A stretch of 57,771 nucleotides of DNA, counting the filler, from Platydemus manokwari (Eukaryota), in assembly GCA_037951405.1 (NCBI GenBank). It is 5 parts of 5 records of this genome, joined end to end, with 100 filler letters (N's around TTAATTAATTAA, not from the genome) between each part and the next. Parts side by side here need not be neighbours in the genome. Positions count along the whole stretch, not along the records: positions 14,037 to 25,525 come from JBBMOY010647764.1; 4 more parts are not named here. One strand, written 5' to 3'. Made by a program: the position numbers and the translations under genes. This document shows positions 14,037-25,525 of the stretch, in pieces. The first letter of the stretch is position 1. Each line of letters opens with the position of its first letter. Under the pieces are notes generated by a model. That model was not told the origin of the DNA and ran no database searches. It saw only the letters and a program-made list of their open reading frames with translations.

Positions 14037-14862
14037 ATATGCTCTATTTTATTCAGGCTGGTTAATCTTTGAACAAATACGTTTATGTATTATCATTACA
14101 CGGATTTAATAAAATATAACAAAACGAAATAATAAAATAAACAAGATAAATCACGGATATAAAATGAAATACTTTATAAAAAGGTCTTATCACTACTCAT
14201 ATAAGAAAATCCAGTTCCAAAAATATGTATTCCTTAACTTTTGATTTTCAGAATTTTTCTAAATATTGCCTATCAATTTTCATTAACCACACCAATAAAA
14301 TTGTATGATACAAGTTTATTTAAGAAAATCAATATTTATTAATATAAAAATATAAATTAATATTCATATATTTTACAATCTGTAAGCAAATATTTGAATC
14401 GATTATATAGAAATCAATGCTAATTAACCTCATACTTGTTAATTTATTTATCAATTCCCACAAAATTGACTAATCAGCTCACTTAAGTTAAAATAAAGAA
14501 ATTCAAAATAGCAATGGCAGCTTAGATAGTTATTTTATTTAATCAATTAGATATTATAAAAATTATAAATATAATCTTCTAGGTGGTGTGTGTATTAGAT
14601 TTTCGAAATTTTGATTATTTATTTTTGTTTATTGCCTTTGCATATATTATGAACTTTATTAGTTTATAACAATAGTTTTTAATTCAAAGTATTTCTTTTA
14701 AAGTTTTGTTTAAACATTACAAATTATATTGAATTAAATATCACTGTAAACATAACTTTTATAATATAGATTTTTAATTTAATTTAATTTAAATCTTAAT
14801 TAAAAAGTTTAATACTTTTTCCAATATTTTAGTTTTAAATTTTAATATTTAGAAATAAGAAA

Positions 14863-17800
14863 ATGGCTTCAAGTGACTTCGTTGAAAATATAATTCAAAC
14901 ATTAAAAGGATTTTGTGTAAATTATAATAACAATTCTACAATTGACGGAGTGGAGCAGCATAAGATTGTTATTGTAGATGAAGATAATATTGACACAGCT
15001 GTATGGTTATTTTAATTCTAAAATCGATGATTAAATCATAATTAGGAAAAGTTGCGTGCTTTTCATTTATTACCAACAGTAGCTTTGACTTTGAAATCGG
15101 AAAACACCAGAAGCAAATTGATTCCAATATTAGAAAGTAACTTTAATAAATATTGGTAAAAATAATTCTACTTGATTTAGCATTGATTACTGTAGCGGTT
15201 GACAATGGAGACGATGAAGCTATAATGGTTATAGCTCAAAAATTGGGTGATTTTGTACCTCTAGTAGGAGGTGGCAATTATGCTGGATGTTTGTTGGTAA
15301 GATGAAATACATAATGATTAATGTTTTTTAAAAATTACTTTCTATAGCCATTATTAGCTAGAATTATTTGTTGCGTTGAAGAAATTGTAGTTGTTCAAGC
15401 AGCATGTGATTCGTTGATAAAAATTATCCCAACTCTAGATTCAAATGTAGTGGATACGAATTGTTTACAACTTGTCCGGAATGTTTTTGCAGGTAATCTT
15501 GCAGTAGAATGTTTGGAATTGTTTCGATTTAATTTTCTAAATTATGATTTTTATGACCTATTTTGAATTATTCACTAACTGCATAGAATAATAATAGATT
15601 GTTTCTAATTAACGCTAAGTACTTTCTCACGATGCATATTTACTTATTCGCTTGATTTTATTTCGCATAGTTTCTGGTTTTAATAACCTTAATCAGACTT
15701 GATAAGTGTTCGTGATTACTTATTAAGACAATCATGGTGTGGGGGTTCCAATAATGTGCATGCGCAATGAGATATGCATGATTCAATTGGTGTTGATTGA
15801 GACTTGAATTTATTGGCATTTATGCATTTGGTGTACAAGATTGTGCAATTATAAATGTAATTCAAATGGCACAATTATTGGAAGCTGTAATAATGACATG
15901 GATTTATTGATGTGTTGGATAAAGAATACTGAATTCAAGCAATGAGATGAGCTGCTATACTTCGTGTTTATTGTCATTCGTGACATAGTTCAACCAATCA
16001 AATTTGAGGTGATTGACGAGGGGCGAGGTGGTTTATTTAACAAATATACACACACGCACATTGGATATTTGTGATGGGTGTGTGTGTGCATCAATGAACT
16101 CACTAAATGGATGAAATGAATTGTTTTGACAATTACTAGTTTAATTTGCAGTATTCATTGTTGATAAGTTATATTAATGCCGTTAGAGGGTGATTTCTAA
16201 ATTTGAGATAATATTGGCTGGTAATAGGTAATCATTATTTATAGTCGACATTCACAGCCATCCAGAAGCGATTATTACTGATGACAATGTCCATCAATTA
16301 GAGGTCTGTCGAATATTATATTTTCAAGTTTGTTACAGTGATGGCTGAGAAATTTATTAATTCGAATAGATCACTTCATATATCGTTTTCTCTCTGAAAT
16401 TTGTCTCGATTTCAATGGCAGTATATTTGGATCTAATTTATCCAAGATCAATTCTGATGTTATAAGATAGTAATTGTCGAATTAATTATCAAATATATGA
16501 TGATCAAGATGCCGCAATATTTCTCATCTATATAAAATGTCACTGTATCAATTAATAACATTTAATATCTTTCATATTTTATTAACAATAAATGATATTA
16601 GGTGGTTATTGTTTTTGTTTTGGATCAATAATTGAAAATCGAATCTCAAATGTGTATCATAAATAACCCATTTTTATTGGCAACATCATTGCGAATCATA
16701 TGACATCTGGTTGATATATTTTCATTTTAAATGATCTAGGTTCAATAATCATTTCAGTTATTGTTTGAAGTATTTTCTAAATGAACTTGATTATGGTCAA
16801 TTCACACAACCAATGATATATCATTATCCTTTGTAATACATTGTTGATGTCTTTAAATATTTAGAAGACCTTTATTGTGCAGCAAGAAAAGCCGGTGTTC
16901 GACTCATTCCAGTTTGTTATAAAATTGCTAGCCTGGAGTCACAGGCTGAACTTAAAAAGTTTTAAAATTTCCTTATCAACGGTTATAATTTATGGTCTTG
17001 GTTTTTCAGTCGGCTTCTGCATTTATGTATGGCTGAAGATGAAATACCCCTTGTCAGGGCAGGTGCAGTTGAACAATTGACTGATCTAAGCATTGCTGCT
17101 GGATCGAGCTTAAAGCCAGAGATGATTAAAACTCTCACAAGGTTTACTTGAGCTATTAAATTTGCAATGAAATACAACCATATTTTCTATAGCTTGGTAT
17201 CGGATAATCAGAGAGTGGTTCGAGCTGCTTGTGTAAAACCGTTGTTGGAATTAGCTAAAAGTGTGGATTCGAATGAGTTTGATACAATTCTGCTACCGTT
17301 GTTAGAGAAATTGAGTGAAGATTCGAACAGGTGAGTGTTAGAAATTATGCACGGATTGTATTTTACTTAATATTTCTAAAGTTTCAATTATAATAATAAA
17401 TAATACTATTAATAATAATAATTGATATTATTAATATAGTAATGTTGAATAATAATAATATAATAATAATTGATATTATTAATATAATAATAATGGATAA
17501 ATTCAAATCTGCTAGGGATACTCGACGTGGTGTGGCAACCGTGATCAGTGAATTTCAAAAAGTGGGACAAAAATTCGACAAATCCCTTCACAATTTGCTC
17601 ATCAAATTAATGGAGGACAACGAAATCGATGCCAGGAAAATCGTTGCAAGCCAATTAAAGGGTTGATTGATTGATTTCTATATTTTTAAACTCAAATCGA
17701 TTTTGCACAGAATTCTGCTCAGCCTGCTCTCATCAAGTGCTCACAGACAGCGTGCTACCAAAAATCAGAGAACATCTTAATCTCGAACGAGAAGATCGAG

Positions 17801-18082
17801 TGAAAGCTGAATTGGTGAAATCTGTGGTAACAATGATCCCCAGTTTTAAAAGAGAAGATTCGTTACCGTTGGTGCAGCACGTGTTATCATTCCTCAATGA
17901 TTCGAATTTACAGGTGATTTATTTCCTCATTTGATTCGGCATTTGATTCGAGATTTTTAACTGTTTCCATTGATCTCTTTATATTTAATTGAGCGTTTCT
18001 ATGATGTACAGCAATGGTCTGTGTAGTGGTAATGATTGTGTGATGAATAGAATTGTTTGTAAATGTGCACATATTTCATGTA

Positions 18083-18119
<37 letters not shown>

Positions 18120-21100
18120 GTCTAAAAAACTAGTTTCTACTCATTGAATAATAAATAATAATAATCACTCTACCATGACTCATTTTCTCTTCCAACTGAA
18201 TCTCGAAACGTGCACATTATAAATCATACAATGGCACTTCTAAAATTATTAGAATCTGTCATTCTATTGGCATATTTTTGAAATACACTTTCAATTGCTG
18301 TGATTGATTGCTGCTGCCGATATCAAGACCAATCGAATAATGTTTCATGAAATAATATCAGTTCTCACACAATCTCATTCTATGAGTTGTTGTGTGCGTG
18401 TTGCATCATCTGAAATCCCCAATCCATATATTGGCACAAAATAGATTTATTATGTAATGAATTATTTCAATGCCTTATTGGTTTCTAAATCTAAACACAG
18501 ATTTGTCTTCAACAAAACCGTGAACCATTTTATCGAACAACTGGTGGAATTTGCACTTTTCGATAATATTTCTCGCATTCTTTATATCAGTTTTTTTACG
18601 TTGAATTTTTTAAATATAATTATTAATATTTTGAATTCATAAAAAAATTATTTTTCAAATTATTTATACATGTTTATATTTATTCAATATAATTATGTGG
18701 TTGCAATATTTCTCATAAAATTTTAATATTGCCATTGCATTATGTCTGATTGAAAACATTTTTCAGATCTAATTGAAAAGCGGCTTTTCGATAAATAATG
18801 GTTTATTTTTATAGAATATTCTCCGATTTCCTATTAATAAATTGTCCAAAAATGTTTATTAAACCTACTCACTACTCGCTAATATCATGATATTGTATAT
18901 CCAATGTAGTTCTGTTTAATGATCCTTAAATTAGATGTTACTAACTGGTTACCATCCGTTCAGATTATTTGAATATTGTTTTTTTGGTAAAATCGAAGAT
19001 AATTTTATGATATTTATGAAACATAATTTTGTCATTTAACGTGACTTTAACAATTTATATCACAATTCAGTTAGGTTTATAATTGAAATTGAATTGTTTT
19101 TCTTGTCACAAGAATTCTCGAAAATTAATCTACGATTGTAATGTCTTTTAATAACATGATCTATGATTCAGTTACAGTTTCTTATTGGTTTTATGTGTGT
19201 CTCACTGTATGTAGTACTTATTGGAAACGGAATGTGCTTTTTGTAAACAAACCCAGTGTTGTATTTACACTTTTTTTTTTGAAAAAAATATTTCAACATT
19301 GAATATTTATATGTATAACGAATATATTCTATTAATTTTATTTTAACCTCACTTAATCTAATAAAAATATCTTTGAACTCAAATACCAACAAAATGATCG
19401 AATTAACAATATTTATTCGACCAGTCGTTAATAAAATTGGTTGGATTCTAATAAATGACATTAAATTCAATTTACGATTATCCAAGTGGAAATGAATGAA
19501 ATATTATGTATTGTGTGTGCTTTGAAATTTGAAATTTACACAATGGTTTTAGTTGTCATGAATAATATTATTAAATATTTTGATTTTTTATATCATTCAT
19601 TTAATCTCAGACGAAGCAATATGTCTTTGAACACTTTCAAGGATTGATCGGGCTCATTTCACCAAGCGAATTGCAGCTTACAATTTTGCCAAGTCTTTTC
19701 AAACTATTCACGGATAAAAATTGGAGAATTAGATCGGGTGTTGTAACATCTCTAATGCTAATTGTACCACTAGTGGTTGGTTTAATCTATTTGTTAATTA
19801 ATTCATCAATTTTTACTATTAAATTTCTGAATTATAATTTCAACATAATATATTAATAACATATTAATACTATTATTATTATTGATTTCATCATAATTAA
19901 TAATATTATTTGTTATTATTAACACGTTGACGGACACTTGCGTCTATAACCGTCAAAGCGAAATTCACTATGCGCCATGCCGGCAATAGCCGTCTAAAAC
20001 GAAACGGTCTTTTTTGTTTTCTACTTATTACACGACTTGCAGCTTAGGTACGCACATATAGTGTTAAATTTCGAACTTCATTTGTTCCTACTGTCCGTCA
20101 ATGTGTTAATTAAGCAATATCATTTTCATTCTGATCATTGTCATTTATATTAATTTTTTTATTTATTGATTATTTTATAAGTTTTGTTTTTATGGATAAT
20201 TTTAATTTGGAAATTGTCGTGAGTTGTATTTCTTGATAAAACATTTATGTGGTGAGGATGATTTTTGTTGAAAGCATTTTATTTGATAGAATGCCAATTT
20301 TTCTTTATTGAAAATGAAAAAAAGCAATAGTGTAATAAAAATTAGACCATAAATTTCAGAAAACAATGAAGATAGTTAATGAAATCATACATTCAATATT
20401 CTCTAAAGACAATTTAGTAATTCATCATTATGGTAACATGAGTGACGTAATGATAGTGCAAATATTTGTATCGTGTCTTTCTAAAACAGACAGAATTGAC
20501 CCGTTAATGAAATCATCACTCAATCTTTATTGATACTTGGCATAATATATCATCGAATAAATATTTATTCCTTCTTATTATTTATATCTAAATGACACCA
20601 TTCAAGCTTGTTCTGCAATTAGGAAATTATCTATTTAGTTTTATTCATTGTTTCATAGTAAATGATAATTCAAGATATTCATCTACAAAATGAAATTATT
20701 CACAAGTATTTAAGCCGTGTTATTTAAACATAAAGTGCAACTGAATTCCAATACATTGATAAATATTATTAAATAATATTCCTTATTCACAGATTTCAAG
20801 TCAAGATAATTTGGGTTTACGGTAAAGTTGTCAGTTTCCGAATGTTATGATAATTTTTAGAAACTATTGATAGTCTTCGGTGAAATGGTTAATACATAAA
20901 TTATTAACATATGCTTTAGATTATTTTACTTTTAAATGTCAATGACTTGATGATTTTTATGTCAATTTTCTTTCATCCAATTTTATTTTGATATAACACA
21001 TATCAGGTCGTTTCTAAATAGTTGAATTTTCGACTAAAATGAAAATTTTCTTGCTAAAACCGAAAATAAACGATATCTAACCTAGTTACAAATAATATAT

Positions 21101-22929
21101 TGATGCAATTTTGTTCTATGTTGCATTTATCAATCTGTGAAAATCACTCAAGTATTGTGTTTATTTGTTCCTTAGCAATTTGTAATATTTCTCTCCGTTC
21201 ACGAGACCAATGCATTGACATATTTATTCTTTTGAGTTGTGTAAACCATAATTAAAGTTATTTTATTAATAGGACGAGGCATGTTGCAGGGATAATTTAA
21301 TGCCCACAGCTCTTTCATGGCTCCGGGATCCTGTTTGGAATATTCGTCAGGGAACGTGTGAAATCATTGGAGCAATATCTGGCCGATTTCCGGCCCTTTT
21401 GGCTGACAAACTCATCAAGGCACCTATTTTGAAGGACTTATATGAAGATGTAAATTATCATTTCAGACAATGTTGGTGCTTTTTGATTGAGGTAGGGTGA
21501 TGTTTGGTTTTTTTTTTATCAAATGAAATTATTGCCACAATGATAATTAGGCAATTTGCAAATCACAACCCAAGGATTCTAAAAGTGATTTACTCACCAA
21601 CTTTCTCACAAACAATATCAACGATCTACTGTTGTCCATGATAGAGAAAGATCCAGTGCCTAATGTACAAATATCGGCAATTCGAAGCATAAAATTACTT
21701 GTAAATTATTTAGATAAAAAGTACATTAAAAATATTTAACCACATAATCGAATTATGTTTTATATTACCTGTTAAGTTATGTTAGCAAACAATTGGTTCC
21801 AGTACTGAAGAAACTTAGCACATCTTCATTAGATATCGATGTTCGTGACTTTTCAGAAATTGCTCTCAAGGGTATGTGTGAAGAATTTGTTTCGATGAAA
21901 GAAAAGTTTTTTTTCATCGAAAATTAAATCATAATATATTTTATATAATTATTTATGATAAAATTATTAAAAAAAATATAGAAAATTGTCTGAATAATAA
22001 TAATAATAATAATTGAAATTTGAAATAGAAGATTAACGATAAAATAACAATTTAGTAAAATATGAAATGAAATAATAATAAAATAACGCAAGAGATTATG
22101 ACGAATAAAAATATATTAGATAATAATAACGATAGATATCAATTATATATATAATTATCCAATCATTATTTATCTTTCAGCTGTCTTGTTGACACTGACA
22201 CGAATGATGGTTTGATAAATAAATTTATTTTCACTGACAAAATAAAAAATGAATGATGTTATTAGCTATTTATTATACAGGGTGGCTCAAAAGTTGGCTT
22301 ACAGACTATTCATTTCAAAATTCGACACTAGTTCATTATATCTGTTAACATAAACAATTTAATCTCTCATATGCTCAAAATATCCGCCTTCAACATTGCA
22401 ACATTCTTCAAATCTCTCCAGGACATTATGACACACACACACACTTTAGTAACTGTAAACTTACTTTTGGACCACCTTGTATATAACGATAAATACAATA
22501 TCATGTAGCTATTGTTTTAAATATTGATGATGTTTATCGGAAAAATTTGTGACCGGTGGAAGTTATAACTGAAAACTGGGAAGTTCAACAAAATATGATG
22601 TGTAGAAATTTGAATTGTTTGCTATCACCAGTATCTAGCACGAATAGATATAGGATTGAATGACAGTCTAGTTGATACAATTTACCTATTTCAAGGCATT
22701 TCACCTAAAAATAAATAACAAGATCAATTTCATATGGTATTTATTTCATATCAATTCAATAAATCGCATTTGGAATGATTCTCCAATAAATAATTAATAA
22801 TTTTGAATACTGATTCCAGGTCTTTTGGCTATTTATACTAAAAAGTGTATCTATTTTGACTGTTGAGTTATTATTATTATTTTATTTAAATTATTTTTTA
22901 TATTTTTAGACATAGAATTGAACGAGTGA
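14863..22929 (+). CDS. Divergent PP2A 65-kDa scaffold (A) subunit homologue, HEAT repeats, 14 coding exons, ~623-628 aa
   Basis: GT-AG exons that splice in frame: 14863-15000, 15046-15136, 15181-15296, 15348-15492, 16865-16958, 17010-17141, 17193-17330, 17516-17661, 17711-17913, 19611-19775, 21273-21491, 21551-21720, 21777-21871, then 22181-22215 or 22910-22929. Motifs TVALTLKSENTRSKLIP, DEAIMVIAQKLGDFVPLVGG, VEEIVV, DKNWRIR, WLRDPVWNIR, DVNYHFR, DPVPNV, DIDVR are collinear with PPP2R1A. Confidence 0.88.
18085..18114. repeat. (TA)15 microsatellite in PP2A-A intron 9
   Basis: Perfect TA run. Confidence 0.95.
19923..20105. mobile_element. piggyBac-type MITE (183 bp) in PP2A-A intron 10
   Basis: 14-bp TIRs CACGTTGACGGACA / TGTCCGTCAATGTG (one mismatch), flanked by TTAA on both sides (19919-19922, 20106-20109). 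Confidence 0.88.
22278..22479 (-). mobile_element. Tc1/mariner internal-deletion derivative (202 bp)
   Basis: 27-bp imperfect TIRs (CAGGGTGGCTCAAAAGTTGGCTTACAG vs reverse complement CAAGGTGGTCCAAAAGTAAGTTTACAG) with TA on both sides. The minus strand retains a transposase-like C-terminus LERFEECCNVEGGYFEHMRD*. Confidence 0.85.
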
Positions 22930-25525
22930 TTCCCAGATGCAAGTCGATCACTCTATCATCATCTGGAAATACTCATTTTCCAATAATGTTAGAATAATAA
23001 TATTAATATTAATAGCGAGTCAGCACACACATTAGTACCAATTGACCTCTGTATATTATCAATATATACCATTATCAATGACTATTGTTATCAATTTCGA
23101 TTCATTTATACACTTGTAATGTTGCGTTCTATTTTTATTTGGAATAATCTAATGAATATGTGATCATGATCGTGTGCGTGTAATGCTTGAGTGTGTTTTA
23201 TTCATGTTATCTTTGTTGATCGCGATCATGAGTGCTTAGTGCATGCATCTATTTATGTCAACTGAATGTCTCAAGGATGGATCCTGTTTTAATGTATATC
23301 TATATAGGTCAATTAAGACGATGTGGTGTCTGTGATAATTGAATAGTTTCTTTTGTCAACCATGTGATTGGTGATTATACTTGTTTTTATAAAGTAGTGT
23401 TCTATAATCTCATCAATTAGTCGAAAGATGCATAGAAATATTTTTTCATTTGGTTTACAGTTTCGCCCGGTGAAAATGGTGAAAGGGTTTTATGCACTTT
23501 CAAAATTGTGAATTTAATTTTACATTAAATTGGTTAGCAATTTAGTGTGTTCAGTGAAAATTTTACGTTTGAAAAATTTGCATTATTTGTTTAGAATTTG
23601 AAATATTTTTGTCTAAAATCCCCATTTAATTTCCATTAATCGAATCATATTAATAGATTTGCAACCATCACTTGGACAATTTATGAATACTGTTGGGTTT
23701 ACTGGTTCATTGTTTTTTAGTTCGATGTAACCTAAATCAAAGCACATTTAGAATAATGTGATAACTAGTTGAGTATTAAACCGAATAATATTTCGAACTC
23801 TATTGTTTTTATTAATAATAATTAGTACACGTGACTCCAAAAGGTGTATGCTGAACTAATATTATAAGATAATTTTATAGATTAAGAATAAAATAAATAT
23901 AAATTCTAATACAATGTAATTGTTTAATTACGAAACAATAAGATTGAATTACAAAATAAGCAAATAATAATACCCTACAAATAGATTAATATTAAAGCAA
24001 ATAACCAGGGAGTTGGATAATCCGCTTATTTGTTTTTGCTTTATTATTTGGTTTAATCTTGGCACCGTAACCATTACTATATGATTATGGTAGGTTTTAA
24101 TAAATTTAAAAAGTGAATTTTGTTTCTAGGTGAACTGGGTTCAGACTATAAATTAATGTTCAAAATCGAGGTAAAAGTATTGAATTTTTAAAAATTGTTA
24201 AAAAGAATAAAATATTGTTCACTGGTTAAGTTGATTGTATATTGTTACAATAACGATTTTTTCTGATTAAGATATGGATTTAATATTGATTCGATTGATT
24301 GTATATAAATACAATAACAATAATTTCTGTTTGAAATCTCGTTATAGTTTTCTCGAGCTTGGTCTATTTCTGACTAATTTATAGTTCATTATTTATTTCT
24401 TTCAATTGCTCGAACTGTATTCTTGCAAATTTTTGTGTATATCAATTATCATCATTATTGTTATTAGGTTATACTCAACAATTCAATTTTGAATAAAACG
24501 TGAACCCACCCAGTTTTTCCATCTTAATTAGAATTGAAATTCAAAGCTGCATTTTTTATCAATTTTTATAATTGATACGCATAACATTTTGTGAAGTTTT
24601 CCAAAAAATTAACGCGCTTTGTTTCAAATGAAAGCGAAACAATAAGGATTAGTTTAATGTTTGTTTAGAGGATTTGTCGTGTATTTTAAAGCCAAAATGA
24701 TTTTAAAAAATTAGCAAAAAAATTATTGAAAAAAGGAAGAAATTAAATTAAAAATTCATTGTATTTATTATATATTTTAGACTAATAATAATAATAGTCA
24801 CAAGGCGGTCTAAATATTATTATTTCCAACTTTAACTATCTGGTTGTGTGATAAACTACGTGATAAAGTAAGAAAATTTATAAAACAAGCATGTATTTAC
24901 CTCGTTATACAATTAAGTTAGAATAAATTAAGGATTATTTTCAGATTACTAGAACGTTATTGATTTATTTTCTAAGCTGTATGGAATATGTTTTTATCAT
25001 TTTTTTTAACGAAAATGTTTAAAAGAAACATTTACTTTATTCAATTTTAAATGAAATATGTTTTATTGTCGCCTAATTTTTATATCTTGGAGAACCTAGT
25101 CAAATATAATTAAATAAGATATATAATAACATTAAATTATTGAATGTATACCTAAAATATCGACTAAAATTTTGTTTGAATCAAGTCTCCCTCGTGAAAC
25201 TTTGATTTGTTACGAGTCACTTGGAATGCGTAATTTTAATACATTAAAATTAAAATTAAACGCTGCTTTGCTTTTGGACTTACTTAATTTTATATTAGAC
25301 TATTACCAAGGTCTTAAAAACGAGTATGCTCAGCGAGATGACGGGCTTAATAATGCCCCCAATCCCAGGAGGCACTCAGATAATCGATTTTCTGAAAAAC
25401 CTAAATTTTATTCTGGGGGAAAATCTAAACTTACCAAACTTTTCCGGGCAGGCTAAGCAATCGCGAAGGTTGTACAGGAAAAAGAGTTTTCCGACAAGGA
25501 TGACAGGTTCTATACCTCCAGTCCC

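Follow-up and report, generated by a model that had tools for sequence, protein, structure and literature searches.

The window analysed here is a stretch of 57,771 nucleotides of the genome of the flatworm Platydemus manokwari (GCA_037951405.1), in which parts of five records are joined end to end. One of these parts, from JBBMOY010647764.1 (14037-25525), is AT-rich (G+C 19-37%) and contains a single clear gene on the + strand, at 14863-21927. The gene product is a homologue of the scaffold subunit (A, or PR65 in the broad sense) of protein phosphatase 2A (PP2A). It belongs to a clade of strongly diverged flatworm proteins in which several residues that contact the regulatory B subunits in canonical A subunits are replaced, and it probably serves as a scaffold with altered partners.

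Frames read across canonical splice sites gave 13 exons, all with GT-AG borders, encoding 635 amino acids (aa) with 0 internal stops, from an ATG at 14863 to a TAA at 21925-21927 that is reached by reading through the last exon. A preliminary description of this DNA had placed the gene here and had judged it unlike a pseudogene because its exons splice without stops, and both statements agree with the present model. The span given there, 14863-21871, is correct at its start, while its end falls on a possible GTATGT donor (21871/21872) inside exon 13, beyond which the frame continues to 21927. Because of this donor, up to 18 C-terminal residues are uncertain. The ten motif strings that had been quoted for the P. 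manokwari protein were all found in the translation, and the human PPP2R1A strings set beside them were seen in PDB chain alignments. Exon joins 9/10, 10/11, 11/12 and 12/13 are confirmed by the orthologous fragments P0001 and P0002, which are continuous across them; the donor of exon 10 is a weak GTTGGT, confirmed by P0001 continuing through the join. P0002 crosses join 12/13 but departs from the model after ALK, which leaves the 3′ end of the coding sequence uncertain. The Macrostomum orthologue has a matching extension at its N-terminus, which supports exon 1. Four intron positions of the Macrostomum lignano gene, numbered below by its protein P0046 (aa 74, 160, 453 and 525), coincide with introns of the P. 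manokwari gene. The exons are as follows.

Exon 1, 14863-15000, + strand: ATG and GT donor; clade-specific N-terminal extension of about 45 aa, aligning with the N-termini of Macrostomum orthologues.
Exon 2, 15046-15136, + strand: HEAT1; AG/GT borders with continuous frame; the following intron position is that of M. lignano (P0046 aa 74).
Exon 3, 15181-15296, + strand: HEAT2, the repeat closest to canonical A (45% identity).
Exon 4, 15348-15492, + strand: HEAT3 and the start of HEAT4; VEEIVVV loop; E100 kept; the next intron is shared with M. lignano (aa 160).
Exon 5, 16865-16958, + strand: HEAT4; one residue inserted in the DLYCAAR loop; W140L.
Exon 6, 17010-17141, + strand: HEAT5; IPLVRAG loop; P179 and R182 kept; M180L and R183A.
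Exon 7, 17193-17330, + strand: HEAT6 and the first half of the HEAT7 loop; E216N.
Exon 8, 17516-17661, + strand: HEAT7-8; completes the DSNRDTR loop (S256N, W257R, R258D) begun at the end of exon 7.
Exon 9, 17711-17913, + strand: HEAT8-10; aligns with the clade; HEAT9-10 are the least canonical-like.
Exon 10, 19611-19775, + strand: HEAT10-11; DKNWRIR loop; intron shared with M. lignano (aa 453).
Exon 11, 21273-21491, + strand: HEAT12-13; WLRDPVWNIR and DVNYHFR loops; the next intron is shared with M. lignano (aa 525).
Exon 12, 21551-21720, + strand: HEAT13-14; DPVPNVQ loop.
Exon 13, 21777-21927, + strand: HEAT15; DIDVR loop and stop codon; possible alternative donor at 21871/21872.

These exons align colinearly to all 15 HEAT repeats of the PP2A A subunit. 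Databases were searched with single exons or with natural orthologues, and the joined 635-aa model was compared locally (BLAST against fetched proteins, MAFFT alignments and trees). Single exons had weak generic HEAT matches in Pfam. In PDB, exon 10 matched PP2A A subunits nearly exclusively (E = 3e-9, with the strongest stretch at HEAT11), the exception being one weak non-PP2A match, and exon 7 matched PP2A A subunits at the colinear HEAT6 position (E = 1.7e-4), with one weak other match. Exon 11 was ambiguous (PP2A A, E = 2e-3; importin-beta, E = 4e-3), and exon 9 searched alone had no PDB match. The alignment of P0027, a Macrostomum orthologue of 608 aa, to human A alpha and A beta runs end to end, pairing its residues 42-606 with 24-586 (E = 3e-53); nothing besides PP2A A subunits, and hence no PPP4R1 or PPP4R4 chain, was matched by P0027 in PDB at E <= 0.001. 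The AlphaFold2 model of P0046 has paired helices throughout, with a mean predicted local distance difference test score (pLDDT) of 90.7 and a low-confidence N-terminal extension (pLDDT 44-52). It superposes on PP2A A chains with template modelling (TM) scores of 0.82-0.86 over 577-600 columns, the next-best folds being CAND1, SF3B1 and karyopherins (TM 0.3-0.5). By language-model features, the nearest ESM-Atlas clusters were PP2A A subunits in 10/10 cases, which we take as a lead only. Local comparison of the joined model with canonical A subunits gave 24-25% identity (E = 1e-30 to 5e-48). Loop skeletons of the PR65 type are recognisable in HEAT2, 3, 5, 6, 8 and 11-15, including the irregular PR65-specific loops DEDE..LL in HEAT2 and NY..R in HEAT13. 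The P. manokwari gene product is thus a scaffold homologue of the PP2A A type, as had been proposed, and the PDB matches of exons 7 and 10, the end-to-end alignment of P0027 with human A and the predicted fold of P0046 carry this assignment. A generic importin-like HEAT protein was also considered as a candidate and is ruled out by the full-length PDB search with P0027, with no such match at E <= 0.001, and by the TM scores of 0.3-0.5.

Relatives were sought with exon 11 (73 aa) as the query of an exhaustive HMMER search through 1.84 billion representative proteins, which is blind to relatives below about 35% identity; the search therefore does not establish that the clade is restricted to flatworms. 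It matched P0001 and P0002 (79% identity on exon 11), P0027 and weaker fragments. By local BLAST, the joined model shares 86% identity with P0001 (205 aa) and 37% with P0027 (576 aa, E = 1e-115). P0027 comes from a transcript-like contig, and the near-identical P0046, P0054 and P0055 are "hypothetical proteins" of M. lignano. P0028/P0052 is a partial protein of the cestode Schistocephalus solidus with the same loop variants, and P0022, P0018 and P0026 are further relatives without labels. Word-index searches that used the Macrostomum orthologue or a clade profile, and in which generic HEAT words took up the 8000 candidates, gave only Macrostomum proteins and two distant A subunits among the matches listed and are uninformative on the extent of the clade. 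The clade thus spans distant flatworm lineages, namely Macrostomorpha, a cestode and the P. manokwari lineage. Its proteins are labelled "hypothetical" or "TOG/HEAT domain-containing" in the databases, and a literature search found no paper on this clade.

In trees, the P. manokwari protein does not group with canonical animal A subunits, and the divergent proteins are monophyletic at 100 on a very long stem. This stem attached at a basal metazoan polytomy in a quick posterior mean site frequency (PMSF) tree made without long protist branches, and between Metazoa and the remainder in an LG+F+G4 tree. The clade is further marked by one-residue insertions in the HEAT4 and HEAT9 loops, by KQ instead of VR in the HEAT10 loop, by the motif NY[HQ]FR[KQ].W in HEAT13 and by the conserved N-terminal extension of about 45 aa. 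Cestode-type members (P0028/P0052 of S. solidus, and P0026) also have long low-complexity inserts rich in Gly, Ser, Ala and Thr between the HEAT12 and HEAT13 loops. On an ENA metagenome contig (L003, 3760-4532), a gene for a cestode-type member adjoins a gene for a MUN-domain (unc-13/CAPS-like) protein, a neighbour that indicates eukaryotic DNA within the metagenome assembly.

The preliminary description had called the gene a specialised paralogue. A search with a canonical-A profile found, as the best non-self match, a canonical A subunit of M. lignano, P0057 (A0A1I8H4X3, 885 aa). Its residues 300-885 are 69% identical to the A subunit of another animal, with TPMVRR and SWRVRY intact, and are 29% identical to the divergent protein of M. 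lignano itself. In trees, this canonical M. lignano A falls within Metazoa, next to the A subunits of molluscs. The divergent clade is therefore paralogous at least in Macrostomum, where P0046 exists beside P0057, and the presence of both types in M. lignano places the duplication before the split from the P. manokwari lineage. For the P. manokwari genome itself, paralogue status is something we infer from Macrostomum. The P0057 gene model is a merge, in which residues 1-299 are a corrupted partial A copy and residues 300-885 a complete canonical A. Another annotation of canonical A subunits concerns bdelloid rotifers, in which five canonical PP2A A subunits of 960-994 aa (P0140, P0148, P0149, P0166 and P0171) bear the label "Protein HGH1 homolog". 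These Rotaria and Adineta proteins carry HGH1 Pfam domains, representing either a genuine fusion or the repeated merging of adjacent gene models.

It is known that HEAT1-10 of the A subunit bind B subunits and HEAT11-15 the catalytic C subunit, with hotspot sites at P179 and R183 (HEAT5) and S256 (HEAT7) (PMC6558005). E100, W140, F141, D177, P179 and M180 contact both B56 and the small t antigen of simian virus 40 (SV40), and E216 is a small t contact (PMC1945078). We compared residues at such sites with ten canonical A subunits, from five animals including M. lignano, Arabidopsis, a chytrid, two amoebozoans and a heterolobosean.

E100: E in P. manokwari (kept); E in 10/10 canonical A subunits.
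W140: L in P. manokwari; W in 10/10.
F141: Y in P. manokwari; F in 10/10.
D177: E in P. manokwari; D in most canonical A subunits, a few having E, S or D at D177/E216.
P179: P in P. manokwari (kept); P in 10/10.
M180: L in P. manokwari; M in 10/10.
R182: R in P. manokwari (kept); R in 10/10.
R183: A in P. manokwari; R in 10/10.
E216: N in P. manokwari; E or D in canonical A subunits.
S256: N in P. manokwari; S in 10/10.
W257: R in P. manokwari; W in 10/10.
R258: D in P. manokwari; R in 10/10.

W140L, M180L, E216N and W257R are common to every clade member covering the site. At the level of residues the preliminary description is borne out, W140, M180, R183, E216, S256, W257 and R258 all being replaced; E100, P179 and R182 are kept.

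It had also been proposed that HEAT11-15 are conserved and HEAT3-7 altered, so that the protein keeps its catalytic-subunit face. We scored each HEAT repeat in an alignment of the model with the ten canonical A subunits. Compared with an animal canonical A, the protein is 28.7% identical over HEAT2-8 and 23.7% over HEAT11-15 (Fisher p = 0.24), with 33/64 and 26/59 canonical-invariant columns kept, respectively (p = 0.47). Among invariant residues of the intra-repeat loops, HEAT2-8 keep 19/41 and HEAT11-15 keep 15/26 (p = 0.45). The lowest identity to canonical A, 18.9%, is found in HEAT9-10. The contrast between the two halves is thus not upheld, nor is a catalytic-subunit face kept relative to the N-terminal half, since the divergence of the P. 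manokwari protein is uniform along its length; uniform divergence over the repeats in a formal alignment is the outcome that the preliminary description had itself named as speaking against its claim. The apparent contrast arose because the loops chosen for comparison were those that match best on the C-side and worst on the N-side. The only orthologue with an asymmetry at the loop level is that of Macrostomum, which keeps 19/41 invariant loop residues on the N-side and 21/26 on the C-side (p = 0.006), and the clade ancestor may have had such a contrast. The motif skeletons NWRIR, DPVWNIR, NYHFR, VPNVQ and DIDVR are retained in HEAT11-15 of P. manokwari, yet at the invariant-residue and identity levels this half is as given above.

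A different picture comes from comparison within the clade. Between P. manokwari and M. lignano, the best-conserved repeats are HEAT3, 4 and 5 (46-51%), followed by HEAT11 (44%), and identity is 41.4% over HEAT2-8 against 32.4% over HEAT11-15 (p = 0.06). The former B face has thus not decayed; it was rewritten into a new sequence that is conserved within the clade. The M. lignano gene occupies 8.2 kb of genomic DNA with introns, while an intron-free contig of 1884 nt (L001) holds an uninterrupted open reading frame (ORF) of 1827 nt, indicating that the gene is transcribed and spliced. The ratio of nonsynonymous to synonymous substitution rates (dN/dS) between two Macrostomum copies is 0.06, with a dS of 1.44 that is near saturation. 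The clade protein is therefore under strong purifying selection between these two copies.

Taken as a whole, the best explanation, to which we assign a probability of roughly two in three, is that the P. manokwari locus is an intact, spliced gene of a strongly diverged paralogous branch of PP2A scaffolds (PR65/A), whose product is likely a scaffold with a remodelled partner face. The clade protein keeps the full horseshoe of 15 HEAT repeats and would still work as a scaffold. The ridge of HEAT11-15, with its C-binding loop skeleton (WR.R, D...IR, NY..R, PNV and D.DV), may dock the PP2A catalytic subunit (PP2Ac), or possibly that of PP4 or PP6 (PP4c or PP6c), while the remodelled ridge of HEAT3-7 would misfit subunits of the B55/B56 type and might carry a lineage-specific partner instead. 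The outcome would be a separate holoenzyme class and not a passive sink. Some points weigh against this explanation. The C face may also have changed, as its 15/26 loop residues in HEAT11-15 are no better kept than those on the N-side; the putative binding of a C subunit is deduced from motif skeletons; and the joining point of the clade to the canonical tree is model-dependent. A bolder version, in which the clade is an ancient second PR65-type scaffold of flatworms, with its B face rewritten and frozen, forming a new class of PP2A-family holoenzymes parallel to canonical A/B/C, is a tentative proposal about which we are more doubtful than hopeful.

Other explanations account for parts of these data. 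The clade could represent a flatworm orthologue of PPP4R1 or, less likely, of PPP4R4, that has lost its disordered insert and is a scaffold for PP4c instead of PP2Ac. The identity of 24-29% to canonical A is in the range of PPP4R1 against PPP2R1A, and the very long clade stem joining near or outside the base of metazoan A subunits is as expected of an old paralogue. However, the alignment to PR65 holds repeat by repeat, with almost no insertions or deletions and equal length, and the PR65-specific irregular loops in HEAT2 (DEDE..LL) and HEAT13 (NY..R) are shared; PPP4R1 is also absent from the ten nearest language-model clusters, all of PP2A A, though that is a lead only. We consider this orthology unlikely. 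The protein might also act as a catalytic-subunit sink, the first option raised in the preliminary description, binding PP2Ac via HEAT11-15 with no third subunit and titrating the core enzyme, as the replaced canonical B-contact residues and the better-kept C-side loops of Macrostomum (21/26 vs 19/41, p = 0.006) might suggest. A partnerless N-terminal ridge should drift, yet HEAT3-5 are the most conserved repeats (46-51%; HEAT2-8 41.4% vs HEAT11-15 32.4%, p = 0.06), and the same replacements occur throughout the clade, which makes such a sink improbable. The conservation of HEAT3-5 within the clade favours a new partner over both a C-subunit sink and a dying duplicate.

It is most improbable that the gene is a decaying or functionless duplicate that has so far escaped stop codons. 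Its strong divergence from canonical A and the loss of otherwise-invariant residues would fit decay, but the 13 exons are intact, the protein is conserved over flatworm orders with shared introns, dN/dS in Macrostomum is 0.06, the Macrostomum gene is transcribed and spliced, and the orthologue is predicted to fold confidently (P0046, pLDDT 90.7). Alternatively, the protein could be the sole A subunit of P. manokwari, the canonical gene having been lost and the B subunits having changed in parallel. This is very unlikely, as M. lignano keeps a canonical A alongside the divergent one and canonical A is very highly conserved, with 46-59% identity among animals, plants and amoebae. The canonical A subunit is moreover essential wherever it has been studied. 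A paralogous scaffold with a remodelled partner face thus remains the explanation that we prefer.

Rfam gave no match on 14037-25525. Three further features lie in introns of the scaffold gene, and one lies at the end of the piece.

Intron 7, 17384-17510: AT-rich tandem duplication with a unit of about 45 bp (aataat...ttgatattattaatata).
Intron 9, about 18085-18112: (TA)n microsatellite.
Intron 10, 19918-20110: 193-bp element resembling a miniature inverted-repeat transposable element (MITE), whose terminal inverted repeats are 19 nt long and 95% complementary; TTAA at each outer end suggests a piggyBac-type target site.
End of the piece, 25172-25525: G+C above the surroundings, with two overlapping ORFs, one of them cut by the edge of the piece; the region matched nothing in Pfam or Rfam and may be a repeat or a fragment of a mobile element.

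Few eukaryotic proteins are as conserved as PP2A A, whose known paralogues, A alpha and A beta, differ very little from each other. With the canonical scaffold (PR65; PPP2R1A/PPP2R1B, Pp2A-29B, PAA-1 and Tpd3), the clade protein shares its size class, the 15 HEAT repeats in the same order and, in the orthologue model, the horseshoe fold (TM 0.82-0.86). It differs in its identity of about 25%, against the 46-59% that canonical A subunits share across animals, plants and amoebae, in the replacement of W140, M180, R183, E216, S256, W257 and R258, in forming a clade of its own, and in its HEAT4 and HEAT9 loop insertions, its KQ for VR in HEAT10 and its N-terminal extension of about 45 aa. Generic HEAT solenoids such as importin-beta, CAND1 and SF3B1 match single exons about as well as PR65 does (exon 11) but are far worse over the full length, with TM scores of 0.3-0.5 against 0.82-0.86. 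PPP4R1, a distant PR65-like scaffold of PP4 composed entirely of HEAT repeats, is an earlier example of an A-like scaffold that has diverged and has partners of its own. Vertebrate PPP4R1 differs from the clade protein in having about 950 aa, a long disordered insert and other loop motifs. Compared with these systems, the flatworm clade is a natural experiment in scaffold re-wiring, in which residues whose mutation in human tumours disrupts B-subunit binding are replaced and the new residues are under strong selection. It may offer a route to new regulatory partners of the PP2A family in flatworms, which include regeneration models and major parasites, and if parasite-specific partners exist, the resulting complex would be distinct from the PP2A of the host.

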